Below are positions 2 to 63,600 of a stretch of 64,000 nt of DNA, in pieces. Position 1 is the first letter of the stretch, and every line of letters begins with the position of its first letter. Origin of the DNA: Bigelowiella natans CCMP2755. Lineage: Eukaryota > Protista > Cercozoa. Position numbers and translations under genes: made by a program. The notes beneath the pieces are model-generated. The model made no database searches and had not been told where the DNA came from. It saw only the letters and a program-made list of their open reading frames with translations. The stretch lies in the NCBI GenBank assembly GCA_000320545.1, contig ADNK01002544.1:62001-126000 (forward strand), read 5' to 3'.

Positions 2-2239
2 GTTGCCAAATGGAAACATATCTACAAACCACACCCGTCAGACAAGAAAAATCGAACCTTTCACGCTGAAACTGAGGCCTGGAGAAATACCTTCAGGAAA
101 AATGAAGACAAAAAGATCCACAGTGTTAATTCACACAACAGAGATTTTTCCATGCATGAACTAAGAAACGTGATCAACAAAGCATCACCGTACAAGTCTC
201 CTGGCGATGATGGTGTTCACCTAAACATGTTGAAAAAAAGCAAGAAACTCCATCAACTGTGGTTAGCTACATTCAACACGTCATGTAGATGGGGTACCCG
301 AGATGGCTCACGCAAGGCGGCCATTTTTTGTCTCATCCCTAAGGCCAACAAAGAACTTGACACCCCTCTCAACGGGAGAACGATTTCTCTCCTACAAATA
401 GCTTCAAAAATGGAAGACAAACTAATAGAACAACGGCTCCGCGAAGCTATACCCCCCAAAAACATCAGCACACATCAGCATGCATTCATGAAAAATCGAT
501 CCTGCGAAACTGCACTCACAAAGATGACGCAGTCAATCGAGGATGGAGTGTGTGACAAAAAGCTTGCAGCCATCCTGTTGTTTACAGATGCCTCTAAAGC
601 TCATCCAAAAGCCTGGCATTCCGGCATGATGCGCAAGTTACATGACAAACACGGAACACGAGGCTCGCTATTGCTGTGGATCGACGACTGGCTCAGAGAT
701 CGTACCGCCAGATTCAGATTTGGCAATGCTCTCTCTGAGCACATGAACCTTGGGAGCGGCGTCCCCGAAGGATCATCTCTCAGCTGTTTCCTGTTCACAA
801 CCCATTGCGACATTTACGAACATGTTGCCAACACAGATTTCCAAATGTGCTGTGACGACGTTGCCCCCCACAAATTGTTTTCGCCAAACCGATGGGGGAA
901 AATGCAAGATGATGTCCAGGCCGACCTAAACCAAATGACGGACTGGTGCATGAAATGGCGGATGCGATTCAATGGGGACAAGAGCGGGTGCCTTGCAATT
1001 GACAAAAGAAACAAAGCCCACCGACACCAAACCTCCTGGAACATCTCTCTCAATCTCCAAGGAAAAATGAAAAGAGTCGACAGCGGCAGATGTCTCGGAC
1101 TGATCTTCGACAACAAATTGACCTTTGAAAAACATGCTCTTGCTTCTCACCTGAGATTGCAAAAGAAGCGAAGGTTTTTGTCAAGGTTGTGTTGTTCCAG
1201 ACACCTTGCACCGCTAAACGTCAGACTGAAATTTTGCAAATCATGGTTCCTTGCATCCAGCAGATGCGCTGCTCCAATGTGGAGATCACGAAGAAACACA
1301 CGAATGAAACAGATGGATTCCATGGAATCCCAAACCCTGAAACGCACATTGGGATCACCTGGATCCATCTCCAACGACGTCCCCCACGTCCTCACTGGCA
1401 CGTTGCCACCCCGATGTCAAACTGAAGTGCAGTGTGCTGAATCATGGTTGCGCACCAACGCATGGATCGACACAGGCAGCGGTCCTCAAATCCATGAGGG
1501 AACAAATGATTGGAGCAGTTGTGGCTTCATCATTGAAAATCGAAAAATGTTGGATGGCACATCGTGGATTGATGTGGCCACACACACGTGGAACAAAGCA
1601 TCCTTGTTTCGACGGCTCAAATCGATCACTGACGACTTGTTAGGTGACGAATTGCCCACCGTTTTGGCGACAACAGAGGCGCTGAAAAAAGAACTGAAAA
1701 AACATCACAAGGTGATGAAATCTTGTGCTTTCAACGAATTCGAAGAGGAATGGTCCAATGATTCATTGCGCGCTGTGCATCTCAAGAATCTTGGTTTCCT
1801 CCCGTCATCTTCGATCACCGGCATCAAACTGAAACTTCCAAGTGTTGCTACATCGTGGATGCGCGCCATCTGTGGTGTCGGCAATCTTGGCAAATTCATG
1901 CTGTCACGTGGACAATGCACAGAGGAAGATGCCACGTGCGATGCATGTGGCATCCTGAAGGACATGGATCATCTCCTGCAATGTCCAATGCATGGTCGAG
2001 AACAAATCAGATTGCGCAATCAAATGCGCGCGATCATGAATCGCAACGACGACACGAACCGGTTGACAAAGGCTGAAATTGAATCCAGAACTGCTGCGCG
2101 CAGTGCGCGGCAACATCGGTCGCATGAGGACGCTTTCAAATGCATGAAACACATTGTGGCAGAAACCAACAGATGCAACATCAGCGCTGTAGCCGCTGCA
2201 TTGCACAGCTACATCAGGATGACCATTGAAAAAATTTGA
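2..2239 (+). mobile_element. Non-LTR retrotransposon (LINE) reverse-transcriptase ORF, cut by the window edge and hypermutated (probably inactive)
   Basis: Frame is open from position 2. RT motifs KSPGDDG, LIPK, RTISLL, QHAF..NRSC, DASKAHPKAWHSG, GVPEGSSLS, QMCCDD (YADD position), RCLGLIFD (YLG position); C-terminal C-x2-C-x7-H-x3-C knuckle (CDACGILKDMDHLLQCP). Conserved Tyr are replaced by Cys/His. Confidence 0.92.
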
Positions 2240-45693: not shown

Positions 45694-45726
<33 letters not shown>

Positions 45727-46736
45727 TGATATTAGTATCTTAATATATTGATTGTTGATAAATTATTTGTCACACGAAAAACACACTCTCACACACATTT
45801 GACCAATGCACAGCTCGTTCATCCTCCTCTTCGGAGTCATACGTGGCTTTACCAGTCGAGTGGGAAGTGACGAGGAAGCTGATGGCACATGGAATAATAG
45901 GTAGTAGCAACAAACACATTTGCACTACTAAGTCTTCACATCAACAACTGATAGCTGCGTCGTAGTCTAATCTATGTCTAAATAGGCAATTAATTCGCCT
46001 GTGAAAACGCAATTGCATGTGCACTCGGTGGTGTTGGGTTTTCCATGTGTTGTTGTCATCCTCTTCTTTCCCATCATCATCATCGTCATCATCATTGCAT
46101 GTTTGTGCTATTTGCAGCTGTGACTGCATCCGTGATGGTTTACGCTGCAACGTAAGTGCAAACAAACAATGAACACATTTTCCTTCAAAACCTTCATCAA
46201 CCACAATGTTGGAATGGCATCGCTAATGCAATTGCGCACATGTTTCGATACCGATTGTGCAGTGAAGAGAGAACGAACAAAATCCATCAAAGTTCAATTT
46301 GCACGATGTTGTTCACGTTTCTGAAAAATGGAATTTTGTGTCTTGAGAAGGAGAATTTGCTTGATTTTTCAGAGTGGAAGGGATTTACGGGGTGAAGAAG
46401 GAGTTTTGATTTGCACCCGTGAGCAGCGCATCGAAAAAAATCACCTTGAACACCGTTCACATTTGCCACCGCCAATTGGTGTTCATTTGCACATTCAACA
46501 TGCACCATGCACAGAAAATGGCACACGAGAAACTAGGAAAGCACACGAAAGCTCGTCCGTGCTGGCTAGCTGGCGTGCAGCATGCAACTGACGTGCAGAC
46601 TGCAGACTTCCACGCGCATGCAACACCAGTCGGACAAACCCATCTGTTTGGCCCGCAGTGCGAACGGCAAATGCCAGGTGGCAGCCAAGCAATGCGTCCA
46701 ACGTGCGTGCAACGTTTTGGGACCAAGTTTGAACGC

Positions 46737-47121
46737 TTTTGCACTGATTTTGCTTGTCTGCTCCAGTGCTCTTCAATGACCAGATGATTGCATCAACGAC
46801 AAACCACCACCTGCAATTGTGGTGTCCACGTTCAAGGAGGCTGTCGAAATGGAAAAGCACTTTGTCACTGAGTCTCCACCGTGTGAATCACTTGGCATGA
46901 ACTCAAACCTGGTGAAAGAATGCATCGAATTCTCAGCTGACAGCAGGTCATTGCAGAAATTGGGATGCGATGAAGTGCACAACACCAGCAACCCACTTGA
47001 CTTTGTGGAAAAAGCAAGCCTTGAAGGTGAGACCAACTTCTTCGAGCATCGACCCACTCAACATCAGTTGGCCACAGCAGCTGATGAGGGTGCAGACCTT
47101 GAACGTGGTGAGGATTTCCAA
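46737..47121 (+). pseudogene. Ribonucleotide reductase small subunit (R2) C-terminal part, intronless, hypermutated
   Basis: CTDFACLL...KEAVEMEKHFVTESPPCESLGMNSNLVKECIEFSAD..LQKLGCDEVHNTSNPLDFVEKASLEGETNFFEHRPTQHQ...EDF matches the class Ia R2 C-terminus; the expected stop after EDF reads CAA. Confidence 0.9.
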
Positions 47122-47306
47122 CACAGCCGAAAGGTCTTCCATTCGCACGTGTTCTTCTCGGCTCGGCTGGACCACCTTCAGGAGAAGTTTGGGAAAAATC
47201 GTGTCCGTTGCTGGGGATGTGATGTCCCCGATGTGCGGTCACGACTTTTGTTTTGGGAAAAACACCAATGTCATCACAACTGTCACTTTCCACACGTTTG
47301 CCCAAA

Positions 47307-47379
47307 AAAATTGGCACGTTTGAAAACACAAAATTGGCACACTTGAAAGTGCAAAATTGGCACACTTGGGAGTGCAAAA
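47307..47379. repeat. Three tandem 23-bp repeats
   Basis: AAAATTGGCACGTTTGAAAACAC / AAAATTGGCACACTTGAAAGTGC / AAAATTGGCACACTTGGGAGTGC. Confidence 0.85.
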
Positions 47380-48130
47380 GACACGTGTGGCAAAAACGCC
47401 CAAACGAAGTGACAAATCGATCGATTTTTTGGAGGTTCTCGTTTTTTTTTGGTGAAAACGTGGCACGGAGAAAACGGAGAAAAAGCAGAAAACGCTCATC
47501 CAGAATTCCAGAACCTTCCACTGCGCACCGACAAACGACATCCTGCCCTCCAGCTGCCACAAACATTGACACTTTCCACGCGAAGACCTGAAAGCAAACG
47601 GTGTGAAACACAACGGTGTCGTGTTCCCGTTCCAATCTCCACGTTTTTTCCTTTCAGGTGAGTGAAAAGTCCACTGCTGAAGAAAAAAACAGCAAATCTC
47701 CCACTCCTGAACAAGCAAACGACAAGAAAGTGAGCAAAAAAGGACACGATTGGTCTCGTTGTGTTGGCAAGGGCAGGGTCCAGTTTGGACATTGGGAAGA
47801 CTTGCCAAAGATTGACGGCTCGGTGAACGATTTTTTGCTGTGGACCAAACGTCACGCAAACGTGACCGGAAGGACGTCGAGTTCATCCACGATGCTTGAT
47901 TGCCTTGCGAAGAACTTCACAAGAAGACCAACACCAGCACTGGAGGTGTCAAGAAGAAGAAGTTCTGCAAAGTGCTCGCCTGCTTTTCGATGGATGGTTT
48001 TCGTGGCATCACAAAAAGTGTCGAACACAAACACCACGTGTGCGACTGTTTCCTCCAAGTCATCACGCTCGGACGTGAGTGCAGGGTGAAGTTTCTCCTT
48101 GGGCGTGCGGACTGTTTGGAACGTCTGAAC

Positions 48131-48255
48131 GATGACAACAGCTCCGATTCCGATGTCGACGGCTCCCATTGCTTCGGGGGTTCTTTTGCACTCTTCCAGA
48201 GTGACAACAGCTCTGATTCCGATGTCGACGGCTTTTGTGGCTTCGGGGGTTCCTT
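48131..48255. repeat. Tandem duplication with 69-bp period in a degenerate ORF (DNSSDSDVDG x2)
   Basis: GACAACAGCTC[C/T]GATTCCGATGTCGACGGC...GCTTCGGGGGTTC at 48134 and 48203. Confidence 0.8.
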
Positions 48256-51200
48256 GGCTTCGGGGATTTTTTTGAGGACGAGGATGAGGTTGAGACACTC
48301 GACCCAAGTGTGAACGGAACACCACTCAAGGCGAAAAGGAAGAGAGTGGAAGACAAGGACGAGGACAAACACGAGGACGAGAACGAGTCTGAGGATGACA
48401 ACCTGGTCAGCCCTCACGTTGGAGTTTGGAGGAGACGGCCCTGGTGCCATCTCCGTTGCGCGAGAGAAAAGACACGTGATTGATGAGGAGTGAGTTCACA
48501 GAGGTGCCCACCCTCCAACAGGCCCAGCCAGCTGGCCAGTTCCTGTCACTCCAGGAAGGGCACTGCCCTCCTGGTGCCCACTCGTTCTCTCGCGTGTTGC
48601 AAGACTTTGACCCCTGAGTCCAGTGAGTGGAGCAAACAGTGGAACAGGTCGTGATTTCGTGCACGAAACGTGCAGAAGTGCACGAAGACACAGGCCAAGG
48701 TGGCTCGCCCACCTGCAGCCTGTGCACCGTGAAACTTGAAGAGGTCAAGGATCCACGTGAAGTCCACAGGTGAGGGGTCCGTTCACCTGTGCGGCTCCCA
48801 TCGGCCGCACAGGCACCTTGAAGTGAGGACAACACTTCCAGTGGGTGCTCGTGGACTGTGACTGAAAACGACAAGTCCTTTGCGGGTTCTTCCTTCTCCC
48901 CCCCCTTGCCTTTTGATTTTTGAACCAAAGCAAGGAAAGGGAGTCCCGTGAAAGTGACCAATCCCCCTCCCCCCACCCTCCCCACTGAGGATCACCTGCA
49001 AGCTCGTGGGGGGCGACGTTGTTCAGCTCGCTCAGTGTGTTTTGCACGAGCGCTGTCGTGAGTTCGCACTTTCGTTCACCGTTGCGCTGCAACAAAGAGG
49101 TGCCCTCTTTCGGAGGAACAAAACAACCCAGCACCAACGTTTTGTTCTCGAAGGAGCGACCTCCGAAGCTCGCACCTCTTGCCACTTTGGGACAAAACTC
49201 CAAACTTGCAGCTGTTTTTCCCAACGATGGCAACTGTTGAAACAGCTGCACTTGCTGGCTTGCACTCACGACCCCCTCCCACAAGGGTGCTCCCTTGTCG
49301 TCCGTGTTCGAACTTTCAAACTTGACAAGAGGAAAAAAGGGAAGCGTGGCGGGCTTTGAAGGGGTTCGTGCGCAGCTGGTGTGAGCTGCAGGACTTCAAT
49401 CCTGGTGAGCTGTGTCGTGCACAGAGCAGTTTTTCGTTGCGATGACAACGCACGCATGCGCGTGCGTGCGCGTTGTGTCGTGGTTTTTGCCTGCTCTGTC
49501 CACACGAGCAACACTGAAACAGTTCTTCTCAGTGACTGAGCTGGTGAGGTCACGTGTTTTTGCCTCTCACCACGAGAGCGCACCACTGAAGGCGTTGCAC
49601 ATCGTGCTGCACACGCGTGCCACACTTCGCAACTTGTTGACAACAAGTTGAGAGGAAGGGCAGCGTGTCAGAACGCTGAGAGTCCATGGCCCGAAGTGTG
49701 CAGCTGCGACGTGCAGCCAGCGGGCGTTCGCCGAAGTGCGACAAGCGGCTGCGTGTGCAAGCAGCGGCAAGCAGGAGCACAGGGCAAGCACGCCAGTGCG
49801 ACGTGGCAGCACAACGTCGTGCAAGGCACTGTGCTGCGACACGTGGCCACTGGTTCACTTGCTCTGGCAGCACGCGTGCAAACCGTGCTGCACGCGCGTG
49901 CAGCTGCGTCCTCCTTGAACACAGAACTGAGACCGCCCACCAGCCGCCCTGCACCTGCTGTTTGCTCCAGTGCTTGCCAGCTGGCCGCCCACGCATCGCC
50001 ACCTGCGCTGATCGTCCAACAAGAGCGCCAAGGAACCTGGTGCTGACGACCAAGGAGGTCCAGAGGCGTGAAGGTTCACAGCGGTTGACACCAGCGTGTG
50101 GTTGTGACCGATGCGCGTGCGTGCACGCTCCACCTCACAGGAGAACGCCAAGGAGCCTGTTTCCCGCGTGCAGGCAGTCGACGCGCAATTGCACCAAACG
50201 AAGGTCGTGAGTGCGTTGGCTGCTCCGCGTGAGGGCGGATTTGGGAACTTGCATGAACTTTGGCAAAGTCCTCCAATTCACTTTTTCACCTTTTTTTTCA
50301 CCCAAACTTTCCCCCGCACTTTGGGTTTTCGCACACTGACCCTTCCACGTCTCAACCAGGACCAGAGGCAACGTGGAGGGCGGGGAGCACACGGAGGATG
50401 TTGAGGGCATGAAAGTGGACGTGGCCATGGACCGCTGCCAACACCGAAAACAGACTCGAAAGTCTTTGGTGGACGAGGTCAGGAACTTCGAGAGTGTCGC
50501 ACAGCGGAAGGTCGCAAAACAACTCTTTCTCCATTGAAGGAAAAGTCAGGACGAGCTTCAAGCAAAGAAGTGGGAAATCACGTGGCAATCCACGGCCTCT
50601 GGTGGCCACTTTGGAGCCTTCCGGCCCAGCCCCCAGGCCCACCAGGGCGGCCAGTGGGACTGAGCCCGATGCCAGTTGAAGGCCCAGGACCCCCCCTTCC
50701 CCCCCCGAGCTCTCACCCCTGGAGAGGCATTGTGCGACCCAAAGGACCAAGCTGGCAAGCCCCCTCGCACTTTTTCGGCCAAACCTTTGGCTTGGCGACA
50801 CAAAACTTGTCGTCGCCCATCCAAGGCGGGTGAGGAGTGAACTCGGACCCCTTTTCGTGCAATTGCAGGGAAAAACGACACCTCCTTGACAAAGTTGGCC
50901 CCCCCTGCAGCCAGGGTGCTCGAGTTGTGCAACGGCTTTTCCTTTTGGTCTCCTTCGACACGCGAGGAGCACCCCCCAAAAAAAGTTGAGAGAGACGATG
51001 CTCCACTCTGTCGAGTTTTCAGCCTCCCACGGATCGTCCCTCCACGGCTCCCCTGAGCTGCACGTTGAGACCCGGAGTCGGCCCCGTGTCCTCACGTGGC
51101 ACCTCCAAGTTCGTGCTTGACGACCTCCAACTCTCCCCAACCGTTGCAGCGTCGTGGTTGTCGACGTTGGAGAGTTTGGACCGCCCAGGATCGTGTCGAG

Positions 51201-51899
51201 CGAGCCAGGTTTCCCCTTCCGTCGACAGGATGATCGGCTCCCTGGCTGTCGCGGAAGGAAGACTCCTCTCTCACCAGGCGGGAAAGCCACGATTTTTGTC
51301 TTTTTTGGCAGGAAAGTTGGTTTCGAAAAACTCTTGGGGGCCTTCCTGAGAACCCCCTGCACCCCCGGTGGGTGTTCTTGGTGTTCCCAAGTTGCTGGGG
51401 GTCAGTTCTGAGCGTTGGAACCGCTCAACTTTGGTGGGAGGCCTTTTCTTGCACTTCGCTGTTTGACAAAAACCGGCACCTTGGCTGATCACTTGTTCCT
51501 TGCGTGGGTGCAACTTGGAACTTCCTGGTGTCTCCACCGTGCCAGCGTGCTCGTTGCACTTCTCCACGTCGGTCGGCTGGTCGGGTGGGCCACGGTGCTG
51601 TTTTCGTTCTCAGTTTGCGCTTCCTTTGCGCACGTTGCACTCGGTTCTGGGTGCTCTGGTGCTGGTCTGCACCGTTTTGCTCGTGAAGCGGCAGCAGTCG
51701 GAAACGTCCGAGAGGTCTTGTTGTGCCTCCCACTCACTTGGTTGTTCGTCGTGTGTTCGCCTGCACTGCGTCGCTTTTTGAGTGAGCCTGCCGTGCACAG
51801 CGCCTTGGCAGCGTTGCTCCTCGTTGCAAAAGTTGTGTTCAACGTGCTGAGTCCTGGTTTGCTGTTCCTTCCCTTGTCAGCGCGACGTTTGCAGGGACA

Positions 51900-52810
51900 G
51901 TGTCACAAGGAACGCACGTGCCAGCACCCGAGTCACTTCTCACGAGAAACTGCCTGGACTCCACCGGTTTGCCTCGCAACGAGCAAGCCGCCAACGACAA
52001 GCCTCGTTCAAACTGGGTTCGTCACCAACAACGGGCGCGCGCGTGTGAGAGGCACGCGTTCACTCACTGTCGAGGTGAACCAGTCACCACCGAGTTGCAA
52101 CTCGGACTTGCACTGCGGATGCCAGCTGGTGCATCGTGTCTCGACATTGCCACAACGTTCAAGGTGCACGAATCCGCAGTGCACAAAACTCCTTGGAGGG
52201 TGGTCGTTGCGTTGTGCAACGAGCACTCCATCGAGTTCCCTCTTGGAGAACTCGATGCCCTTCGACACACAAAAACTGAACTCCGCAGCCGTTCTGAGCT
52301 GGAGTGCTTGGAAGGCTGTGTCGGGTGCACGGACGGTTTGCTGACGAAGGTGAGGAAGCAAGGGCAGTCTGAAACGTGTGCAAGCAAGCGCTTTCGAAGC
52401 CGCAAAGGCTTCGACGCTTTGAACTGCCAAGCCGTTTGCGACGCCCACGGAAGGTTCACTTTGTTCGAGACTTGTGGTGCTGGATCGCAATCCGATGCAC
52501 AAGTGTTCAAATCCGTGGAGTTGAAGAGAGCTCTGTTGGACTCGAAGCTGCTTCCTGGTGGGTTTTGGGTCACTGGCGACGCTGCACGCCCGGCCTCTGA
52601 GTTTTTGGTCGGTCCGCATTCCGATGCGGATGCCAAAGACCCAAAGGCTGACAACTTCAACTGGGCACAGAGCCAATTGCGAATCCGCATCGAAGTGGCG
52701 TTCGGCGGCAAGTTGGTCGGGCGCTTCGGCGTCCTTTAGAAGCCCACTCGAGTGGATCACGCGAGAGCTTCGCTCGTCGCAATGGCTTGTGCGAAATCGC
52801 ACAACGCTGG
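51900..52810 (+). pseudogene. PIF/Harbinger-type DDE transposase (DDE_Tnp_4), hypermutated
   Basis: LALRMPAGASCLDI, GCVGCTDG, RKGFDALNCQAVCDA, GSQSDAQVF, GDAAR (GDAAY), NFNWAQSQLRIRIEVAFG, RFGVL*, CAKSHN. Confidence 0.9.
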
Positions 52811-53194
52811 AACGTCACAATCACGTGCGACTTGGAGCACCAACAGCACCACTGCGATCACAAAAAAAACACGCACGTGAGAACTCCTTGGGACTTGGTC
52901 GGCGAAATCATCGACGATGACCACGTCAGTCGCGGTCGATTTGTCCCAAGGAGGAGAGCAGGGCCACGCTTGCACCTGTGTCAAACAAACACGGTGGCCC
53001 GATGGAGCTTTTGAAGGACGTTTGGTTCCACGCTGCAAGCCATCGTCACTGCCACCTGAGGGAAAGGTTGAAACAGGGGGTCTGCGACTTGGGCGTGGTC
53101 CGACCCTCAAGCAGCGTTGAGCATCGATCCAAAACCAATGGCACCACCACTGCTGCTGCTGACGAGGGATGATCGACTCAGCTGGTCAGGCACA

Positions 53195-53375
53195 ACCGAG
53201 CTGCCAGCGTGGCGGGCTGCAGCAGCAGCCTCGAACACCGTTTCGATGACGTTGCGACGACAGCTGCTGCTGCAGCGAGCGGCGGCAGCAGCCTCAAGTG
53301 CAGTTTGAACGATGTCGTTTCGCTGTGTCAGTGACAGCTTCCAGTGAGCGGCAGCAGCAGCCTCGAACATCGTTC
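53195..53375. repeat. Three degenerate tandem units containing GCAGCAGCAGCCTC
   Basis: The minus-strand translation repeats EAAAAA three times at ~65-70 bp spacing. Confidence 0.6.
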
Positions 53376-53630
53376 AACGGAAGTGATCGGAAATCCTCGG
53401 GCTGCGTCGTTTTCACCTTGCCGCTGAGGACAGCCGATCCAACTCTCAACGTCAGGTTTCTGACTCCTGGTGCACTTGTCCCGAGACAGCTGCACCAACT
53501 TCTTGACACCCAGGCTCGAACAGCCCTGTGGTTCGGGTTGGCCTCCAACACGTCCAGACGTCAGCGAACCGCTGCAACACCGAACTCGTCAGCACCTTGC
53601 CTCTCCTGTGAAAAGTGCAACTTTGAACAC

Positions 53631-53701
53631 TGCGCCCACCGGGAATTGAACCCGGGACACTTGCTTGGAAGGCAAGTGTGTTGCCACTGCACCACGAGCG
53701 C
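53631..53701 (-). tRNA. tRNA-Gly(TCC), hypermutated, probably a pseudogene
   Basis: GCGCTCGTGGTGCAGTGGCAACACACTTGCCTTCCAAGCAAGTGTCCCGGGTTCAATTCCCGGTGGGCGCA: cloverleaf with anticodon TCC; D-arm reads GTGCAGTGGCAACAC where GTGTAGTGGTAACAC is expected. Confidence 0.8.
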
Positions 53702-53872
53702 TTGTTTTGTGTTGCACGTGTGCACGTGGACGCGTGTGCACACACAAGTTTCGAACACTGCTCACGAGAAAAACACAAGGGAAAAGGTTGCACTGTGTCC
53801 ACGAGGTCGACCTTCGGTCCACTTGACGGCACTTGGCTGCCGATGGCTTGCAAGCTTCGTTGTGCTTCAAAA

Positions 53873-54051
53873 CTGGAGGAGGCCGTGATGGGTCTCGAGG
53901 CCTTGTGGACAGGAGTCTGCGTGTGAGACTCACTCTCGTCCAGCGAGCGAAGAGTGGCACTTGTGTCCAGTGGCACGTTCGATGACGTCACCTGTTCTTG
54001 GTGCAGGTGCCTGGACTTTCTTCACGACGCGGTTGTGCCGGTTGAAGTTGC
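53873..54051 (-). pseudogene. Inverted, hypermutated RT fragment of the Gypsy family at 54770-60485
   Basis: Reverse complement aligns with 57492-57665 (SLDESESHTQTPVHKASRPITASSS vs SLDKNESYMQTPIHKTSRPITAFSS). Confidence 0.85.
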
Positions 54052-54357
54052 AGGTCAAGTGAACAAGTCAAGTTTGGTGTTGACCTGCGTTGGGTGTGGA
54101 AAAGTGAGGAAAAGGAAGAGAGCACAAAGAACTGTGAAGGAGAGGGACAGGAAGTCCTTCGAGTGCAGCTGCCCTTCTTGCTTGAGGCTGCTTCACAGCG
54201 ACAACCGAGTCGAAGTCACCCACGTGGGTTCCTTTGTCGTCGTTCTTGTCGTTGTCATCGTTGTCATTGCACGTTCCCGTCGTCGTCGACACCAATTCCC
54301 TTTGCACCAGCAGTGAGCAGCAGCAGCGTCCGTTGAGACACAGCAGCGTGCAGAGGT

Positions 54358-54769
54358 GAGGAAGTGGCACTTCGTCGTGTTCCCTTGCGGCCCAAGCACG
54401 CCAGGCGACGCACTTGCTGGTCAGAACCACGAGGCGTGCACACACAATGGCGTGGCTTCAGCGTCGTGGGTGTTTGCATTCGCACGTGCAGGTGGTGATG
54501 CGGTGTGCACCAACGTGGTCGTCGCTCAGACTTTCCTCCTGGAAAGCACACTCGTCAGGTTTGCACACTTTGGCTTCACTGTGCGGCTCCAAAAACGTGC
54601 CTTCCTGGCTGCAAGGACAAAACGGTGTGGGTGCTGCCTGCACAAGGCCGAATTGCCCCGAACCCTGAGAAGGTCGCTGCACTGCAACAGGCTCCTGTGC
54701 CCAAAAACGCAAAAAAAGTGAAGTCACTCCCACAAACAGCAGCGTGGACGCTGCGCAGGTCCGCTCCCA
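54358..54769 (+). pseudogene. Hypermutated Gypsy RT fragment (left part of the interrupted old copy)
   Basis: Aligns with 57673-58083: RKWHFVVFPCGPSTPGDALAGQNH...FARAGGDAVCTN vs RKWHFVVFPYGLSISGDAFSSQNY...FVYVDDDIICTN. Confidence 0.93.
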
Positions 54770-55095
54770 TGTAGCGCGTACCACTACGCGGGCACAAGTC
54801 ACGTGCGACAACAAAGGGGTTGTCGCGGATATAGAATATAGATAACGTAGATATTAATACAGCATAGGCACGTGGGTTCCGGCGGGACTCATGGCAGCAC
54901 ACCGGAAGTGTGCTGCCCCACGTGCGGCGGCATTCGCGAAAGCTTCGCGAATGATTACGCAGTGCACGATTTAATAAAAATATAATCTTTAATAAAAATA
55001 AACACAACTCTTCAAAAGGAAGCAAACGTGCCTTTCCCCCCCCCTGCCTACTTGTGCACGTAGCGCCTCGGCCTGTGAACACCTTACGCGCAACA
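54770..55095 (+). repeat. 5' LTR
   Basis: TGTAGCGCGTA...TACGCGCAACA (10/11 terminal inverted match), two AATAAA motifs; same sequence as 60160-60485. Confidence 0.97.
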
Positions 55096-55100
55096 ACCTT

Positions 55101-55118
55101 TGGCTTCCACACACGGGA
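55101..55118 (+). promoter_or_regulatory. Putative primer-binding site
   Basis: TGGCTTCCACACACGGGA starts 5 nt after the 5' LTR; TGG is complementary to tRNA CCA. The primer tRNA is not identified. Confidence 0.55.
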
Positions 55119-55134
55119 AACGATTTGACTAACA

Positions 55135-58100
55135 ATGTCACAGCAGCTAGAAGAACAGCAGGACTTTGGCTCGCAGGCCGTGCAAGGGCACGAGCAGAAA
55201 CAGGAAAGGAAGGGCGATACGGACGCTAAGGAAGGAGGAGGAACACCTCCACAGGCACCGCCGGGACCAGCACCCGGGATTAAGAAAGCAGATGCAGCAG
55301 CAGAGGCACTGGAGAACTTCTACGAGGCGGACGACGAGGACGTGGCCGCCGAAAGCAAGAAGGTCGTAATGGCATTACGAGCCTTGCGACCCAGGGCGAG
55401 CAACTACGCCAAACTGAAAGTATCGATAGAATACAAGTATCAGACACATGATGTTTGGGCAGCTATCATGCAGGACATCATGGATTACGAAGCAGACTTA
55501 CCTCCAGAGTGGGCAGCTTTGTTTAGGAACGACGGGGGTCTGGGCGCCTCGCGGGGGACGACCCAGAGCACCGTCAAGCAGCAGCAGCCGGTACAGCGGA
55601 ACACCCAGTTCATGTCTGTTAAAACAGCACCGGTTATGATAACGAAATACAACGGGAAAAGAGGTGAGGCAAGGAGGTGGTGGAAGAACGCTAGGAGTAT
55701 ACTCTGCGACTTTACCCCTAACCCCACCGAAAACGACAAGCTCAAATGGCTAGCTATAATAAAGCAAGCCATGGACCTTTACGAGACAGGCAGGACCCGG
55801 ATCAGGCAGCTAGAGAAAATACACACTACAGTTAGTGGGCTACGAGACGTTGAGGCGATAATGAAGGCTTTTGTAAATGAACAGGATGCTAACTCCCTAC
55901 CCCAGGCTATTAGAAAATACAGAGCAATGATGCAGCATGAGAGAGAACCTGTTAGAGACTTTGCCACGCGCTTCCAGGATATGATCGACGAACTACATGA
56001 TTTTAATTACAACACAGGTGATGATCAGGCAAGGTTTGAAGAGTTCAAGTTAAAGATAAAGGAATCCACTTACGTTACGGAGAAAGGCTACACCACGATG
56101 GAGGCAGCAGTGCAGGCTATATCCCTACGCGAGCAGGAGCAGGACCGCAAGTTTACCAGCCCTAAGGTACCTGGCATAGGAAACATTAACGCTATTAAGC
56201 CGCAGCGAGACTGGTACAAGGACAGGGAAGGTAACCGACGTTGCGGATACTGCTCACGTAAAGGGAAACACACCGCTAAAGACTGCAGAGACAGGAAAGA
56301 AGGACGACCCAGGATGACGATCAGGCAGCTCAACGAACACTACGAGAAGTTAAAGAGAAAGAAAGGCAGAGGACAAGGATATAACAACAGCAAATGGCAA
56401 GGCAGCAACAACGGGAAGAACAATAAATATAAGAACAAAAAGCAGAACAGTATCAATGCTATACAGCAGCAGATAAACGGAATATTAGATCACCTTAAGC
56501 AGGCGCCGACGAAGACAGCAATACCAGCAACGCAGGACCAAGACAAGCCCATGACCCTAGACGACATAAAGAACTTAGGAGTATGCAACATTAATGACGA
56601 AGACGCTAACAGGACTATCAAAGTTGCTATGACCAAGGTTAAAGTTAAAGACAGCTACGGAGACTACAAGAAACTACCTGCCCTTTGGGATAGTGGCAGC
56701 ATGCCGAAGTCCTTCATAAGCCTAAGCACAGTAAGAAGGTTAGGACTATTGGATCAAGTGACTAAGAAAGAACGTAAATATGCTCAAGCAGACGGAAGCT
56801 CTTCCATGAAGACCGTCGGTGAGCTAATGCTAAAGCTACAGATACCTGGCAGCGACGCGGAGACCCAAATCAAGACCCGAGTAGCCATGACTTTATCCAT
56901 GGAACTACTCCTCGGACAGGATGCCCTAGAAAAATTAGGGGGGATCATATCATTCTACAATCACAAGATATACTTTGCTAAGTTGCCAAAGAAGTCAGGC
57001 AGGACCATCAGCCAGAACATGATACGGCTTGACGAGTGGACCTCTGAGTCAAGCGTTAATGCGTTAGAGTTTATGGACCTAGCGGACAACAAGCTACCTA
57101 CACCTACCGAGCTACGGAAGAAGAACCCCGGCAAGACCATCCGACAGATAACGGAGCTACTGGACAAGACCCCCCCAGCTGATGATTGGGATATCGACAA
57201 AGGCAAAAAGTACATTAATAAAATATTAAACGAGAAGTACTCTGACATCACCAAGCCGACGACGAAGCCCTCCAGCAAGCTTACCCCAGTAAAGATCGAG
57301 CTAAAGAAGGGATACGAAGAGTGCATCATCAATGACCCAGAACATAGGCGACCGGAAGCGGACTGGGAAAAGATAGAGTGGCAGATCAATGAATGGGCAA
57401 AGGAAGGGAAGATAGAGCCAAGCAACTCACCATGGAACGTGAGACATGTGCTAGCTAAGAAACCTACTTACCCTTTCTTCCGCCTGGCGCACAACTTCAT
57501 CCGCCACAACCGAGTAATAAAGAGGATCCAGACACCTACACCAAGGATAGATGACGTTATTGAACACGTCATAGGATACAAATACTACTCTTCCCTAGAT
57601 AAAAATGAATCATACATGCAGACACCCATCCACAAAACCTCCCGCCCCATTACCGCGTTCTCCAGCAGGCACAGGAAGTGGCACTTCGTCGTATTCCCTT
57701 ACGGCCTAAGCATATCAGGGGATGCGTTCAGTAGTCAGAACTACAGGGCATACACACATGATGGGATGGCGTCTGTGTTGTGGGTGTTTGTGTTTGTGTA
57801 TGTGGATGATGACATAATATGTACCAACACAGTCGTCGCTCAGATCTTCCTCCTGGAAAATATATTTATTAGGTTTGCACACTTCGGTTTTACTATTAGA
57901 CTGCAGAAGTGTACATTCCTAGCTACAAGAATCAAGTGGTGTGGATATTACCTGGAGCAAGGCCGCATCACCCCAAACCCCGAGAAAGTAGCAGCACTAC
58001 AGCAAGCCCCTAAACCTAAGAATGCAAAGGAGTTAAAGTCATTCTTGCAGACTGCAGCTTGGATACTACGTAGGTTCTCCCCTACCTACGCTAGGACTGC

Positions 58101-60108
58101 AGCTGCTTTTACTACTGCTTACCGGAAGGAGAACTCTGTAGGCCTCAGCTTCGCTAAGGTGTGGGCCAAGGCTGGCCTTGATGCCCACTTCGATAACCTA
58201 ATAAAGTTATGCAGCAACACCCTATTGAATGCTAAGCTAGACACTACTAGACCAGCTACCCTATGGACAGACTGGTCTAAGCTAGGTATGGCTGCTGTAC
58301 TTACCCAAGACCAGCAGATCATACGGGTGTGGGGCAGGGCCTGCACAGCAGCTGAGGCCAAGTACAGCCCTACAAAAGGAGAGTATAAAGCCATGAGTGA
58401 GGCGCAGAGGAAACTAAGATACTACCTGCTGTCGGTGCCCAGCTTCACCTTAATGACTGACCACAAGCCCCTCCTAGGCATCGACCGCAAGCTCGAAGCG
58501 CCTAACGATGAGTATGCAGCTATGAGGGCGGACACGGAAGAGTTTAGGGACAAGAGGACAGTGGTCTACGCACCAGGAGACAAGCAGCTTGCTGACTATT
58601 TCAGCAGGCTGTTCGAAAAGAAAGTCCCTACCCAGGTCACCCCTATGGTTAACGCGATTACCTTCGAGGACGGCGACTTCCTGCCTGAGCCAGAGGAGCT
58701 CCAGCACCTTCAAGAACACCTGGATAAATACAAACACAAGCATGAGGTACTTAGTGATAGGATATATGTATACACTAATAATGTTAGGCGTACCTACGTG
58801 CCACGGCGGACCAGGGGAGCCCTTCTCTTTACCGCCCATGGACCTGCACACGTAGGAGAAAACCATATCACTGCTCTACTCTACCATTACTACTGGCCCT
58901 ACAAGCTAAAAGAGATAAGGACATACCTGCGTGGCTGCAGGTGCTCCAGCTTGAAGGCGGCAGGCGTCGCCACCAAGGAGTCCAGCAAGAGCCGTGCATC
59001 TAAGAAAATCAAAGCAAGGAACTTCTTAGATATCGTGCAAATTGATGTTTATAAGTACGATGGCTATCACTACCTTACCTTCGTTGATGTGGCCACTGGA
59101 AAGTGCTGGGTTAAAAAGATTATCAAGGTCAACGTTGCTAAGAAGAACAAAGGCTTATATAAGCAGAGGCTTACTAACTGCTACCGTACCTGGGAGTCTG
59201 AGCTCCAGGCTATCCCTGATGAAGTTAGCATAAACAAGATACCAAAGAAGTTACATGTGGATAATGAGACCTCTCTTCTACAGCTACCACACCCTAATAT
59301 TGATGCCTCACCTGTATACTATGCCCAGTCCAACTCCAAGGTAGAGCGACTCCACCGCACCTTGGCCAACCTAAGCAGGATAAATAGCACCACACCAGAC
59401 AAGATACAAGGGTTAGTAAACGACACCTTCACGTCTGGGGGAGGTATCAAGGATAAGGAGAGGGAAGAAGGCGACGACAACGACGACGATACCGAGAGCG
59501 AAGACGAGAAGGTCCCGTACGATGGCCGAGTTCTAAAGGAAGGACAGTATGTTAGGGCCAAGGTAAATCTGAGATCGAGAAATAAACAAGACCCCTTCTG
59601 GGGTGGCGTTGCAAAGGTTACCGAGAGGAAGGGGAGGAAGCAGTACTACATCTATGATGGGAACAGGGTCACCTTGCGCCACATCAGTCACCTAAAGAAT
59701 TATGATATCGGTGAGAAGCTCCTAGAGGATGTTAAAGTAAACCCTACTGTGTGGGAGCGAGCAATGCCTTGTTTAGGACCCCGACCTAAGTTCGATGTGG
59801 AATATGGAAACAATAAGGTCAGGGTGAACGACGATTGGCGCATGAAGATTGTCTATCTAGGCTACCCTGGATTACGAAATATGGAGAGGGTAGCTACGAA
59901 AATAAAGGACGGAAAATATCAGCTACTCTACCTAGCTGTTCCCGACTTACCCTTTGAGCACTGGTATAAGGTCCTGGGGGACCTTGATGCAGAGGGCTGG
60001 TATGGACACGAACCTAAGGACGAAGGTGAGTTCTGGGTAAGCGACAAAGGAGATAAGGTTAGAGAGGAATCTATTACCTGGTGGTTGGTGAAGTTCCGAA
60101 AGCGATGA
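55135..60108 (+). CDS. Gag-Pol polyprotein, 1657 aa: Gag with CCHC knuckle, aspartic protease, RT, RNase H, integrase, SH3-like tail, C-terminal adenine-MTase-like domain
   Basis: CGYCSRKGKHTAKDC; ALWDSGS; LLLGQD; SNSPWN; FPYG; YVDD; LWTDWS; TDHKPL; LADYFSR; H..H..YYWP; IDV..VDNE..SNSKVERLHRTL. The PR-RT-RH-IN order indicates Gypsy. Confidence 0.96.
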   Translation: MSQQLEEQQDFGSQAVQGHEQKQERKGDTDAKEGGGTPPQAPPGPAPGIKKADAAAEALENFYEADDEDVAAESKKVVMALRALRPRASNYAKLKVSIEYKYQTHDVWAAIMQDIMDYEADLPPEWAALFRNDGGLGASRGTTQSTVKQQQPVQRNTQFMSVKTAPVMITKYNGKRGEARRWWKNARSILCDFTPNPTENDKLKWLAIIKQAMDLYETGRTRIRQLEKIHTTVSGLRDVEAIMKAFVNEQDANSLPQAIRKYRAMMQHEREPVRDFATRFQDMIDELHDFNYNTGDDQARFEEFKLKIKESTYVTEKGYTTMEAAVQAISLREQEQDRKFTSPKVPGIGNINAIKPQRDWYKDREGNRRCGYCSRKGKHTAKDCRDRKEGRPRMTIRQLNEHYEKLKRKKGRGQGYNNSKWQGSNNGKNNKYKNKKQNSINAIQQQINGILDHLKQAPTKTAIPATQDQDKPMTLDDIKNLGVCNINDEDANRTIKVAMTKVKVKDSYGDYKKLPALWDSGSMPKSFISLSTVRRLGLLDQVTKKERKYAQADGSSSMKTVGELMLKLQIPGSDAETQIKTRVAMTLSMELLLGQDALEKLGGIISFYNHKIYFAKLPKKSGRTISQNMIRLDEWTSESSVNALEFMDLADNKLPTPTELRKKNPGKTIRQITELLDKTPPADDWDIDKGKKYINKILNEKYSDITKPTTKPSSKLTPVKIELKKGYEECIINDPEHRRPEADWEKIEWQINEWAKEGKIEPSNSPWNVRHVLAKKPTYPFFRLAHNFIRHNRVIKRIQTPTPRIDDVIEHVIGYKYYSSLDKNESYMQTPIHKTSRPITAFSSRHRKWHFVVFPYGLSISGDAFSSQNYRAYTHDGMASVLWVFVFVYVDDDIICTNTVVAQIFLLENIFIRFAHFGFTIRLQKCTFLATRIKWCGYYLEQGRITPNPEKVAALQQAPKPKNAKELKSFLQTAAWILRRFSPTYARTAAAFTTAYRKENSVGLSFAKVWAKAGLDAHFDNLIKLCSNTLLNAKLDTTRPATLWTDWSKLGMAAVLTQDQQIIRVWGRACTAAEAKYSPTKGEYKAMSEAQRKLRYYLLSVPSFTLMTDHKPLLGIDRKLEAPNDEYAAMRADTEEFRDKRTVVYAPGDKQLADYFSRLFEKKVPTQVTPMVNAITFEDGDFLPEPEELQHLQEHLDKYKHKHEVLSDRIYVYTNNVRRTYVPRRTRGALLFTAHGPAHVGENHITALLYHYYWPYKLKEIRTYLRGCRCSSLKAAGVATKESSKSRASKKIKARNFLDIVQIDVYKYDGYHYLTFVDVATGKCWVKKIIKVNVAKKNKGLYKQRLTNCYRTWESELQAIPDEVSINKIPKKLHVDNETSLLQLPHPNIDASPVYYAQSNSKVERLHRTLANLSRINSTTPDKIQGLVNDTFTSGGGIKDKEREEGDDNDDDTESEDEKVPYDGRVLKEGQYVRAKVNLRSRNKQDPFWGGVAKVTERKGRKQYYIYDGNRVTLRHISHLKNYDIGEKLLEDVKVNPTVWERAMPCLGPRPKFDVEYGNNKVRVNDDWRMKIVYLGYPGLRNMERVATKIKDGKYQLLYLAVPDLPFEHWYKVLGDLDAEGWYGHEPKDEGEFWVSDKGDKVREESITWWLVKFRKR

Positions 60109-60151
60109 AGGTCTAAGGGAATAAGGAAGGAAGGAAGGAGCAACGTGACTT

Positions 60152-60159
60152 GGGGGAGG
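60152..60159 (+). promoter_or_regulatory. Polypurine tract
   Basis: GGGGGAGG abuts the 3' LTR; a further purine-rich run lies at ~60115-60140. Confidence 0.85.
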
Positions 60160-60485
60160 TGTAGCGCGTACCACTACGCGGGCACAAGTCACGTGCGACA
60201 ACAAAGGGGTTGTCGCGGATATAGAATATAGATAACGTAGATATTAATACAGCATAGGCACGTGGGTTCCGGCGGGACTCATGGCAGCACACCGGAAGTG
60301 TGCTGCCCCACGTGCGGCGGCATTCGCGAAAGCTTCGCGAATGATTACGCAGTGCACGATTTAATAAAAATATAATCTTTAATAAAAATAAACACAACTC
60401 TTCAAAAGGAAGCAAACGTGCCTTTCCCCCCCCCTGCCTACTTGTGCACGTAGCGCCTCGGCCTGTGAACACCTTACGCGCAACA
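60160..60485 (+). repeat. 3' LTR
   Basis: Identical by eye to 54770-55095. Confidence 0.97.
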
Positions 60486-60650
60486 CCCACGTGCACAAGG
60501 ACTGCACCTGCCTTTCCAGCTTTGCTGCAGCTTGCCGAAAGGGAACTCCCTGAGCCTCAGCTTCGCCTGGGTGTGGGCTGAGGTTGACCTTGACACCCAC
60601 TTCAAGAACCCAACAAAGTTGTGCAAAGACACTCCGTTGAACGCAAAGCC
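60486..60650 (+). pseudogene. Hypermutated Gypsy RT-connection fragment (right part of the interrupted old copy)
   Basis: CCCACGTGCACAAGGACTGCA...GCCTCAGCTTCGCC..GGTGTGGGC...CCTTGACACCCACTTC...AAAGTTGTGCA aligns with 58081-58236 and resumes where 54358-54769 stops. Confidence 0.9.
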
Positions 60651-63600
60651 TGTTGGAGTGCTTTGCACTCAATGCGCGAAGTGCATGCTTGTGGCAGCAG
60701 TGGCAACGCCGGCGGGCGTTTGCAGGCTGCGACAAGCAGTGCAGAATGGGCTTCCAATGCAGGCAGGTTCTGTGCCTGCGACAAGGCAGGACAGTGCTCA
60801 TGTGCTGCATCAGCCATGTGCCAGCAAAGGAAGTGGGCGCGTCTTCCTTCCTTCTGCAGCACGATGTCATGCACGTAGTTCAGGTGATTTCGCCTGATGA
60901 CAGTTGACTTGGCACATGCATGTGAAAAGGTCCGAACTCATCAGAGAATCGAGGCAGCCGCTTGTGCAGCTGACCTCCCACCCTTCCTTCCTTCCTCCAT
61001 CTGACTGTGCCACTAGCCTGCATTCTGCACCGCGCCGCCCATTCACTTCTAACAGGTTGTGAGCCTACGCGGCTTCCGCCGCCCAGTTACGCCCAAAAAA
61101 AATTTGGCTCAAACAGTTCAGTCTAGTAGAACTGGTTTGAAGGTGCCACGATACGAACTTGGTCGGTGATGGTCGGATTGCTAGGTGCTGGTGCACCGAA
61201 AATCCAACCAGTCTGGAAAGAATGAATCTGTGTTGGAACAAAACGAAATGTGATTACCCATAACTCAAAAACAAAAATTTGCAACCAAGCAAAACAACTT
61301 AACAGAGGGGCAAAACTTAAAAAAAGTCAAATCGACCAACTGCAACAAGGAACAAATAGCAAACAAAAAAAGCGAAATTAAAATGTTCCCCATCAAACAC
61401 CAAAATGGAATCATAACCACAAAGTTGTTATGATCAAATTGGAACTCGAAAATGAAATTATAACCACTTGTGACCAAAAAGTTGTTGTTATGATCAAATT
61501 ACCCCTTGTTCCCTGGCAAGATTCCCATCCCAGGCATGTGCTATGAAACGAAATAGCGGGACACTGTTCTTCCCTGAAACAAATACCACAACGATCTAAT
61601 AAAAAAAAACAATGGTCTCATCTAGATCTTTACAGATCAAGGAAAGATTTACGAACCTTGAGAACACGACCGTAGCATCAGAATATTGTGCACATCGGAG
61701 AATGGTGGATCACGACAAGTAGCTGAACCACCATGCTCTCCCATGCTGTAACAATTACAGGGAATGAATGAGTGACACACACGACAAAATGATAGTCCAG
61801 CATGCAGAAATACGATTCAAGGATGTGCACTCATAAGTGAATCTAAGAAACGCATACCATATGACAGTGAAACGATTTGTGAATCTCTCGTACTTACTTG
61901 CACCATGCCAAATTCAAATGCATAAATTTTTCATAATGATGTAAACAAATCGAAAATGAAATTAATTCCAAGGAAAAGCATGCCAACCTGCGTTCGCTGC
62001 GGCCTGTAATGCCCGGAACGTGAGTGGTAAATCGCGGCTACCTGATGAACAAAGCAATTATTAACAGCCTCATGCCGACACTGTGATGAGCGCGATTTGC
62101 ATCACGGGGTTACAATTAAGAATCATGCACCGATTCACGACGCATACGTGCATTTTTTTTCCAGACAGTACCGCAATCATGATTGTGATATGCGGGCATG
62201 TGACCGCAAACACATGATACGAAAATAGACAACAAAATCACGGAGGTGCTGACAACACCTCCGATGTCGAAATCTCCATGCATGACAATGCATCCAATGT
62301 ACCTGCAGGGTTGCAGCGTCTTTACCGCTCGCAAGTCCTAGGTAACCTACATGAGGATGTTGAACGACGGTGAACTTACGACTTGACCTAAGGAATGGGG
62401 GTTCGACGCAAGCGCCTTCTTGCGAAAGAAGAATGTTGCATCGAATAAAATCAAAGCAATTACCTTGGAGATATCCCCGTTATTCGATGTCGATATTCAT
62501 AGTCCTCCTGTCAATTCCGACCTGTTAGAGGTCAATTAGTAAGAGTCAACATTAATACCGAAATCGATAATTGTGGTCTGTACCGGCTGGTGTCGGAAAC
62601 GAACCACGTAAGCTCTGAAGAACAATCGCTTACGCAGATGAAAAGGATCCTGAAAATAAAAAAAAAAACAATTGTTCAGCGCTATTGAGCAAACGAATAC
62701 CGCAGGTAATGCTATCGAATAATCGAAGGACGATACTCGTAGCAACATTACCGACTAACGAATATTGCGACTCGAGATTAAATGATGTTGATACAATCAA
62801 CATCATGCGATTGTGACAAAACAGAATTTCGGTATAGTCATATGTGACAAAATGTCATAGCTATCCTCCACGACCAGTCTGTGAGCACGGTCAACTATGT
62901 GGGACGACAATGCAAAAAGATAACAGTCAGGAAATGGGTAGGGAACAGAATGGAGACGTCCATTCTACCTCCACTTCATTAACTGACTGTGTTTCTAAAT
63001 TATAGATCCCGTGTGACTCCTAAGTAATTACCATGAACATGAAAATTGCAAATGAAGCGTTTAGTTGAAAGCACACACACGAACATATGACTCTCAAGCT
63101 CAATTATGAGAAGAGCATGTACCTCCGTCAGTGATGCTCCGAAGAACGGCCTCAACGAAATCTTAATGTCTTGTCTGCACGTTATAAAGATTTGCTAAGA
63201 GGCACAACGTAATAGTTGTGAATTACATTCACACAATTACCGCATAAGAGACGTATCGCTCTTACTCCATCCAGTCCTTCATAAATTAGCGGAATAATTT
63301 CACTCAAAACTTACAGATATTCATGCTCATATACAACCTTGTCAATGAGAAATAATTGGAAAGAAAATATTCAAAATGGAGATTAGACAACACACAAAGA
63401 TGTGTAACACGAAGAGTTGAAGATATATCACAATCACAAATTCGACTTAGGAGAAGATGTAGAATCTATCACGAGGAATGATACTCTACTATCTATAAAC
63501 TCGACAACAGGTTAGTCTACTTCGAAAATTGAAAACCACAGTATATATACTCGAAAACATAAAGGATGAAGCTAACTTTCACGTTTGGTCATCATACTAT

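Follow-up and report, generated by a model that had tools for sequence, protein, structure and literature searches.

A young Ty3/Gypsy-type retrotransposon nested in a TpA-erased graveyard of mobile elements in Bigelowiella natans

How does an intact retrotransposon come to lie, unharmed, inside DNA from which nearly every TpA dinucleotide has been removed, and what does this neighborhood reveal about the process that removed them? The question is raised by a stretch of 64,000 nt from Bigelowiella natans CCMP2755 (contig ADNK01002544.1, positions 62,001–126,000; hereafter the window, to which all unlabelled coordinates refer), in which a Ty3/Gypsy-type long terminal repeat (LTR) retrotransposon at 54770–60485 splits the relic of an older reverse transcriptase (RT) gene. 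In mutation-accumulation (MA) lines of B. natans, the mutation rate of two integrated viral regions is ~1000-fold that of the remaining genome; their changes are almost only A>G/T>C, all of these at TpA, which becomes TpG or CpA (Mettrop et al., 2026; 10.64898/2026.01.13.699255, hereafter the preprint). Hypermutation was seen in 11 of 15 lines within ~200 generations and was episodic and locus-specific; additionally, windows poor in TpA and rich in CpA plus TpG are clustered along the genome, and TpA-poor coding sequences show an enrichment of RT and DDE Pfam families (10.64898/2026.01.13.699255). The tract that surrounds the retrotransposon is the saturated end state of this TpA hypermutation, the mutator being thus one already known from B. 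natans.

Taken as a whole, we consider the following explanation likely. A young, transcribed Ty3/Gypsy-type element would have integrated, with a 4-bp target-site duplication (TSD), into an old graveyard of mobile elements where hypermutation of host DNA in situ, turning A into G on either strand wherever the A is preceded by T, would already have been complete. With TpA exhausted, this activity or one linked to it would have turned to ApT, giving GpT or ApC, and least readily so after G. The mutator would pick particular loci, with the young family not, or not yet, among them, and would not be set off by repetition or retroelement identity as such, while the young family would land in islands that had already been erased. 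That a single enzyme serves both tiers, and that the landing is directed by tethering of the integrase, we infer.

The element and the erased tract around it

The element (54770–60485, + strand; 5,716 bp) is bounded by two LTRs of 326 bp (54770–55095 and 60160–60485, both +) that start with TG, end with CA and are 100% identical, and it is flanked by the 4-bp TSD CCCA at 54766–54769 and 60486–60489. A purine run (GGGGGAGG, 60152–60159) abuts the 3′ LTR and is, by inspection only, a candidate polypurine tract. The single stop-free gag-pol frame (55135–60108, +) predicts a product of 1,657 aa, with a CCHC knuckle and a C-terminal portion of 280 aa of unknown fold. Pfam matches to this product were clear for RT (aa 798–939) and RNase H (aa 1018–1118) and weak for the aspartyl protease (aa 513–599, E 9e-4) and the integrase zinc domain (~aa 1222–1270, E 8e-4); the order of the pol domains, protease, RT, RNase H and integrase, is that of Ty3/Gypsy elements (Metaviridae). 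In a search of solved structures, pol matched best yeast Ty3 RT/RNase H (4ol8, E 1.6e-24) and Ty3 Gag-Pol (7q5b, E 7.4e-24), with retroviral RTs matching far less well (E ~1e-11 or weaker). Judged from its sequence, the element is best classified as a divergent LTR retrotransposon of the Ty3/Gypsy type. No chromodomain or other reader domain was recognised in the integrase C-terminus with Pfam or NCBIfam; Atlas features in this region were ≤0.80 and its single-sequence AlphaFold model reached a pLDDT of only 40. The element contains 397 TpA, the first of them at LTR base 3, and its TpA rho is 1.13; therefore, its escape is not due to want of targets.

On both sides of the element TpA all but vanishes. 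Without the insertion, the tract 46568–60875 holds one TpA (52737) in 8,588 bp, whereas its base composition predicts ~414; enrichment is seen for TG (rho 1.46) and for CA (rho 1.38), and the GC content is 0.49–0.59 vs. ~0.40 nearby. The left main part (46568–54769) contributes 8.2 kb, including that one TpA, with an ApT rho of 0.24–0.58, and the right part (60486–60875) ends just before the first TpA, at 60876, with normal density from ~61000. An initial annotation of the locus, made from the sequence alone, had described an abrupt switch in TpA frequency at both LTR ends, and we indeed found TpA to be absent over 2,032 bp on the left side of the element and over 390 bp on its right side. The 1-kb segment around the insertion has values of 0.02 and 1.68, by our reading of the rho formula of the preprint, and with these it falls among the islands defined by the preprint's cut-offs. 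The left edge of the tract is graded (46100–46567), with 8 TpA in 460 bp, the last two in CTAG, and a (TA)n microsatellite (45697–45724) lies ~400 bp from it; the right edge is sharp (60876–61000).

The tract is a mosaic graveyard of several dead elements and not one old element. Comparison at the protein level (tblastn) delimited an old RT relic on the + strand, the left part of which (54293–54769; pol aa 829–983; 50–79% aa identity) lacks TpA and has an ApT rho of 0.18, and the right part of which (60490–60650) reaches up to pol aa 1034 and forms one segment with the left part if the insertion is subtracted. The relic thus starts at 54293 and not at 54358, where the initial annotation had placed it, and a second, inverted RT piece, also from tblastn, lies nearby (53872–54058, − strand; pol aa 784–844). 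This inverted piece overlaps the + strand piece at pol aa 829–844 and, therefore, the debris is either rearranged or from two copies. Farther to the left are the remnant of a DDE_Tnp_4 transposase of PIF/Harbinger type (52377–52706, +; PF13359, E 1.6e-10) and a member of an old dispersed repeat family (48883–50000), whose other copies are at different stages, with TpA gone and ApT intact or with both gone. Much of the remaining tract was unassignable to any element.

Direction, spectrum and order of the changes

Once a single copy of the TSD is taken out, both halves of the relic can be aligned, as an uninterrupted segment, to 57673–58236 of the young element (563 bases, 72.1% identity), and only small indels occur at their join; by parts, 54359–54640 matches 57673–57954 at 71% and 60537–60649 matches 58125–58237 at 75%. 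These data, together with the identical LTRs, bear out the earlier description of an intact Gypsy element with TSD CCCA that splits a continuous RT segment. None of the 45 TpA of the young segment is kept in the relic, where they correspond to TG (21), CA (12), CG (6) or other dinucleotides (6); 39 of 45 were thus changed to TG, CA or CG. The relic being without any TpA, there is no reverse case of a relic TpA facing a different dinucleotide in the young copy. The direction proposed in the initial annotation, from TA to TG, CA or CG, agrees with this complete loss without gain, and the preprint measured the same changes de novo. The examples quoted in that annotation were also found in the alignment, among them YVDDDII vs. 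RAGGDAV, in which the catalytic YVDD motif is the state destroyed in the relic. The target itself is informative: opposite CCCA, the young RT has CCTA, and CA is present in the left and the right TSD alike; therefore, that TpA had already been converted before the insertion.

Along the aligned segment, 49 A>G and 45 T>C events are interleaved, forming 46 runs vs. 47.9 expected, which speaks for many independent hits on both strands and not for a few processive events. Strand processivity was also considered and rejected, same-strand runs showing no excess.

The initial annotation had the element inserted in a hypermutated copy of its own family, while warning that the old copy was a relative and that some of the differences were ordinary divergence. 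Identity between the relic and the young copy is 78% at non-TpA sites and 82% (217/264) at G/C sites, i.e., at the positions where an A>G/T>C process cannot create differences. At 72.1% raw identity, the relic lies below the identity of at least 80% that the 80-80-80 rule requires within a family of transposable elements. From the 82% identity at G/C sites it follows that the relic is an older relative, not of the same family by the 80% rule; the young family is nonetheless its best match in the genome, at 71–72%. The warning was thus well founded and the notion of a copy of the same family is not supported, what remains being ~0.8 kb of rearranged debris in an 8.6-kb mosaic.

Comparison of the sequences indicates that ApT is a second-tier target of the process, after TpA. 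Only two of the 34 ApT in the young segment are kept in the relic, whereas 13 correspond to GT, 13 to AC and four to GC. For A not preceded by T, A>G changes affected 19 of 47 positions before T vs. 29 of 161 in other contexts (Fisher p 0.0027). Simulated erasure of TpA only leaves a rho_AT of 0.81–1.09, and the observed values are 0.39 in the tract and 0.18 in the relic. A similar progression is apparent in an unrelated repeat family, in which copies L023 and L024 show values of ~0.1–0.2 for TpA and ~1 for ApT, and copies L022, L027 and that of the tract show 0 for TpA and 0.18–0.45 for ApT; the ApT lost in this family became AC or GT, at sites differing between copies. ApT is normal in short islands elsewhere and in the island at 851–2200 of the window and, thus, the ApT tier marks the most heavily worked DNA. 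The count of substitutions by dinucleotide context that the initial annotation had recommended did give the TpA excess, but the annotation itself had missed the ApT tier.

The survivors of both tiers suggest preferences for the surrounding bases. In the tract and in L022, L026 and L027, the surviving ApT are enriched for GATC and GATG; considering only contexts without overlapping TpA, GATC is in ~1.8-fold and GATG in ~1.4-fold excess, with CATT and AATG down to ~0.5, and from this excess we conclude that a 5′ G protects the A. Among TpA, CTAG makes up 41% of the survivors in partly erased islands vs. 4.4% in background DNA. Both CTAG in the compared RT segment (2/2) were converted; therefore, CTAG is slow, not exempt.

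The young family and its landing sites

A search of the genome with the LTR returned 685 first-look candidates, and the 40 that were scored were all 100% identical (40/40). In run X13, contig depth was ~1,300 within the element vs. 4.5 in the flank, a ratio of ~290 that is used as a rough figure only, contig depth being no copy number. LTR candidates and contig depth together suggest a family of ~300 near-identical copies, again as a rough figure. The same ratio was ~520 in run X9 (2025), as compared to run X13 (2011), and the higher value could mean a rise in copy number in culture, if it is no k-mer artefact. The young family is transcribed: 13,523 RNA reads from run X21 carry a loose poly(A) tail at an addition site at ~55017 (60407 in the 3′ LTR), reads that fit either LTR of any copy and thus report the expression of the family and not of this copy. 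RNA depth in run X21 was very high over the LTR (54828–55027 and 60228–60627), whereas the body was covered far less and irregularly, with maxima around 56028–56427 and 59828–60227; downstream of the poly(A) site, first mates lay on the opposite strand.

Thirteen further full-length copies are 99.77–99.95% identical to that at 54770–60485. The alignment of all 14, with variants counted column by column, contains 31 variable columns, all of them singletons; its 22 substitutions include a single TpA transition, with 5,558 TpA available as targets, and the partial copies add one more among ~20 substitutions. The new insertion is therefore untouched, as the initial annotation had it. Two copies of the family, L001 and L002, share two G>A differences (element positions 3261 and 3263), and L002 carries 17 substitutions, the majority of them G>A or C>T; this suggests a sub-lineage of slightly greater age, with an ordinary, AT-biased spectrum and no TpA signature. 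A search for partly mutated young copies gave none: L013 and L016 owe their clusters of mismatches to misalignment at breakpoints, and the changes in L002 are mostly the G>A and C>T already mentioned.

The 211 hits reported in the preprint over 3,132 generations and 6,169 TpA correspond to a TpA loss in a targeted region of ~1.1e-5 per generation; inferred from that rate, the sampled copies would have seen less than ~80 generation-equivalents of such exposure. We favor the explanation that the young family is not recognised by the mutator, over its being protected or simply too new. The initial annotation had left a choice between a slow or episodic mutator and an element that evades it; with ~1e-5 changes per TpA per generation, and hits in 11 of 15 lines, slowness does not fit, and evasion, in the sense that the young family is not a target, is the better account. 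Furthermore, that ~300 identical and transcribed copies are untouched argues against a repeat trigger like that of repeat-induced point mutation (RIP).

It might be argued that the family is a legitimate target that remains untouched only through an extremely recent burst, no episode having reached it yet. The identical LTRs, the star-like phylogeny and the exclusively singleton variants would suit such a burst, with the proviso that singletons could be errors of reverse transcription or assembly, and the mutator is indeed episodic in the MA lines. However, one hit in 5,558 TpA, equivalent to less than ~80 generations of exposure, is hard to square with ~300 fixed copies; likewise, sub-lineages share variants (L001 and L002) and the family was already present in the run from 2011. 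We consider this alternative unlikely.

The family lands preferentially in erased islands. We examined 500 bp on each side of 14 two-sided sites, comprising 13 independent insertions plus L013, and 10 of the 14 fell within both 5% cut-offs of the preprint (binomial 8e-11 against 5%), and 12 of the 14 within that for TpA. For the 13 independent insertions, there are 1.35 TpA per 100 bp beside the element and ~5.5 beyond 700 bp, and the same near flanks are enriched in TG+CA (1.4–2.1 vs. 1.0–1.25 further out). The short islands hit by young copies are old dispersed repeats. The bias toward TpA-depleted DNA that the initial annotation had proposed to look for is thus present; of its two candidate preferences, for silenced and for self-like DNA, the first is upheld for erased DNA and the second is not, with none of the other 12 independent insertions lying in detectable debris of their own lineage (tblastn of the young pol, 1.5-kb flanks), and self-homing is not supported. 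All 13 copies examined, including this one, have perfect 4-bp TSDs, and 13 reconstructed empty sites revealed no motif at the target; most likely, it is a cue in chromatin or in the region, and not a DNA motif, that underlies the preference for islands. Nesting is an ordinary event for this family, and the locus studied here is a useful natural control.

Several observations concern individual sites. One copy of those examined for self-targeting lies inside another young copy. The island at L014:1600–2090, hit by a young copy, is a dispersed repeat that on contig C943 adjoins a copy of the repeat at 48883–50000, and both are probably parts of one old element family. At five of 20 fetched loci (L007, L016, L018, L019 and L001), young copies are nested in, adjoin or are rearranged with other young copies, and among the forms seen are deletions, an internal inversion accompanied by a 281-bp duplication, and a truncated LTR that lies within gag; this clustering could be real or stem from difficulties in assembling a 300-copy repeat.

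The excess of insertions in islands could also be a matter of survival, if the element inserted at random and was then purged from genes and regulatory DNA in a haploid, gene-dense genome. A graveyard would be the safest place to land, haploid selection is fast, and the lack of a target motif would be expected from random insertion. Nevertheless, 10–12 of the 14 sites belong to a class that makes up ≤5% of the 1-kb windows, an excess of at least 14-fold, and neutral space is far more plentiful in introns and intergenic DNA than in the islands. Additionally, the family is very young and there has been little time for purging, and we hold this possibility to be distinctly improbable.

Much less probable still is that the TpA troughs were made after the insertions, by a host that marks the element and a mutation process that spreads into the flanks, with the element itself protected or repaired from sister copies. 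The averaged profile is indeed a symmetric trough centered on the element, but the 397 TpA of the element are intact up to both LTR edges, both TSD copies at our locus carry the derived CA, and each of the 13 TSD pairs is perfectly matched despite the abundance of TG and CA in these duplications. The flanking islands are, moreover, old repeats whose element-free copies elsewhere are also TpA-poor, and the tract includes unrelated debris 8 kb from the element.

We see very little chance that the relic was born mutated, through ADAR-like editing of RNA before reverse transcription and with no process acting on DNA at this locus. The A-to-G change with a 5′ U/T preference does resemble ADAR, as discussed in the preprint, where an ADAT2-like deaminase is named as candidate (10.64898/2026.01.13.699255). 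Editing of a transcript does not agree, however, with both strands being hit equally (49 A>G, 45 T>C) by interleaved events, or with a signature that continues unbroken over 8.6 kb across the inverted RT piece, the DNA-transposon remnant and other repeats, and the MA experiment shows the changes arising in chromosomal DNA.

The junctions were examined in the contigs of several runs. Flank contigs from runs X1 and X13 (X13 dating from 2011) enter the LTR by 26–27 nt with zero mismatches, which is the maximal reach of a de Bruijn contig into a repeat. In three DNA runs, no element-skipping joint indicative of an empty-site allele was listed, although contigs cannot show absence. The idea that a consensus repeat copy was pasted into the contig is hardly credible. 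In its favor, a 300-copy repeat breaks many contigs, and odd inversions and duplications occur at L007, L016 and L018; against it speak the mismatch-free entry of these flank contigs into the LTR, the perfect 4-bp TSD, an old RT alignment that resumes exactly across the insertion and three private substitutions of this copy in the 14-copy alignment.

Some points weigh against the explanation that we prefer, i.e., a young element of an untargeted family landing in DNA already erased by the known mutator. The landing preference derives from n = 14 sites, compared to the 5% quantile of the preprint, again by our reading of its rho formula, and not to a random genomic sample. The direction of change rests on two sequences, one of them a relative ~18% diverged at G/C sites, so that some differences are ordinary divergence. 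The singletons among the young copies may be errors of reverse transcription or assembly, and the age of the family is poorly bounded. As to the junctions, an LTR entry of 26–27 nt is shorter than the 31-nt bridging criterion, and no record is listed for the right junction. Finally, experimental hits, those of the preprint, are at TpA only, and the ApT tier may stem from a slow process of its own or be characteristic of very old DNA. The target regions of the preprint retain many TpA, which would hide a slower ApT tier.

A further TpA-poor island lies at the start of the window, in a copy of a LINE-like family with an open RT frame of 695 aa (RVT_1) at 152–2239 (+). The family has at least 40 copies, of 87–98% identity and forming a 5′ truncation ladder; none was found within the fetched loci. 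The 3′ 1.4 kb of the copy in the window (island ~800–2200) has only 6 TpA, with normal ApT. The family is either TpA-poor by descent, an escape via loss of targets, or was erased copy by copy, and random TG/CA outcomes alone would give ~2.4% divergence, near that seen.

Comparison with known systems and implications

The process that erased the tract shares with the viral hypermutation of B. natans (Mettrop et al., 2026) the same changes, on both strands, and the same end state in composition. The preprint reports hits at TpA only, to which the tract adds a clear ApT tier, and neither the young Ty3/Gypsy family nor the immunity and landing preference of that family are treated there; an element present in so many copies would probably have lain outside the genome considered "callable" in its MA analysis.

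RIP, in Neurospora and other fungi, likewise ruins mobile DNA in place by dinucleotide-specific transitions, with a hierarchy of contexts and spill into neighboring sequences. However, the two run in opposite directions and by opposite chemistry: RIP creates TpA, through C-to-T changes at CpA, and the process described here destroys TpA, through A-to-G changes; also, RIP is triggered by duplication, which here leaves ~300 identical copies untouched. Fungal RIP was accordingly ruled out, by the A-to-G direction and by the unmutated identical copies.

The landing in islands is reminiscent of targeted integration. Ty5 and chromoviruses integrate into heterochromatin. Ngaro elements, in turn, integrate into the endogenous virophages of Cafeteria (PMC8547959). 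The family described here shares with these systems a strong excess of insertions in a small compartment that is already inactive, with no motif in the target DNA; it differs in that no reader domain was recognised in its integrase, and in that its compartment is defined by a mutational scar. With the ADAR and APOBEC enzymes of animals, the mutator shares a deaminase-like preference for neighboring bases, with a 5′ T favored and a 5′ G disfavored as for ADAR. Unlike them, it acts on chromosomal DNA in place, on both strands, and on the debris of DNA transposons too.

A more far-reaching proposal, which we offer tentatively and with more doubt than confidence, is that the ordered hierarchy, from ATA-type TpA to CTAG and then ApT, with protection by a 5′ G, could serve as a clock of exposure to a repeat-independent mutator, and that the islands could be the harmless and preferred landing pad of an active family that goes unrecognised, in a stable truce between genome defence and retrotransposon.

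The locus provides a natural before-and-after pair for a defence process with one experimental description so far, giving the spectrum of outcomes at saturation and the continuation at ApT after TpA exhaustion. The context rules, with a 5′ T best and a 5′ G worst, constrain the enzyme, and a candidate DNA adenine deaminase should reproduce them. What the locus adds to that description is thus the saturated spectrum, an ApT tier with its context rule, and a quantified landing in islands by a high-copy element that is not attacked. Repetition or retrotransposon activity is not enough to draw the mutator of B. natans, which argues for its targeting through the locus or chromatin.

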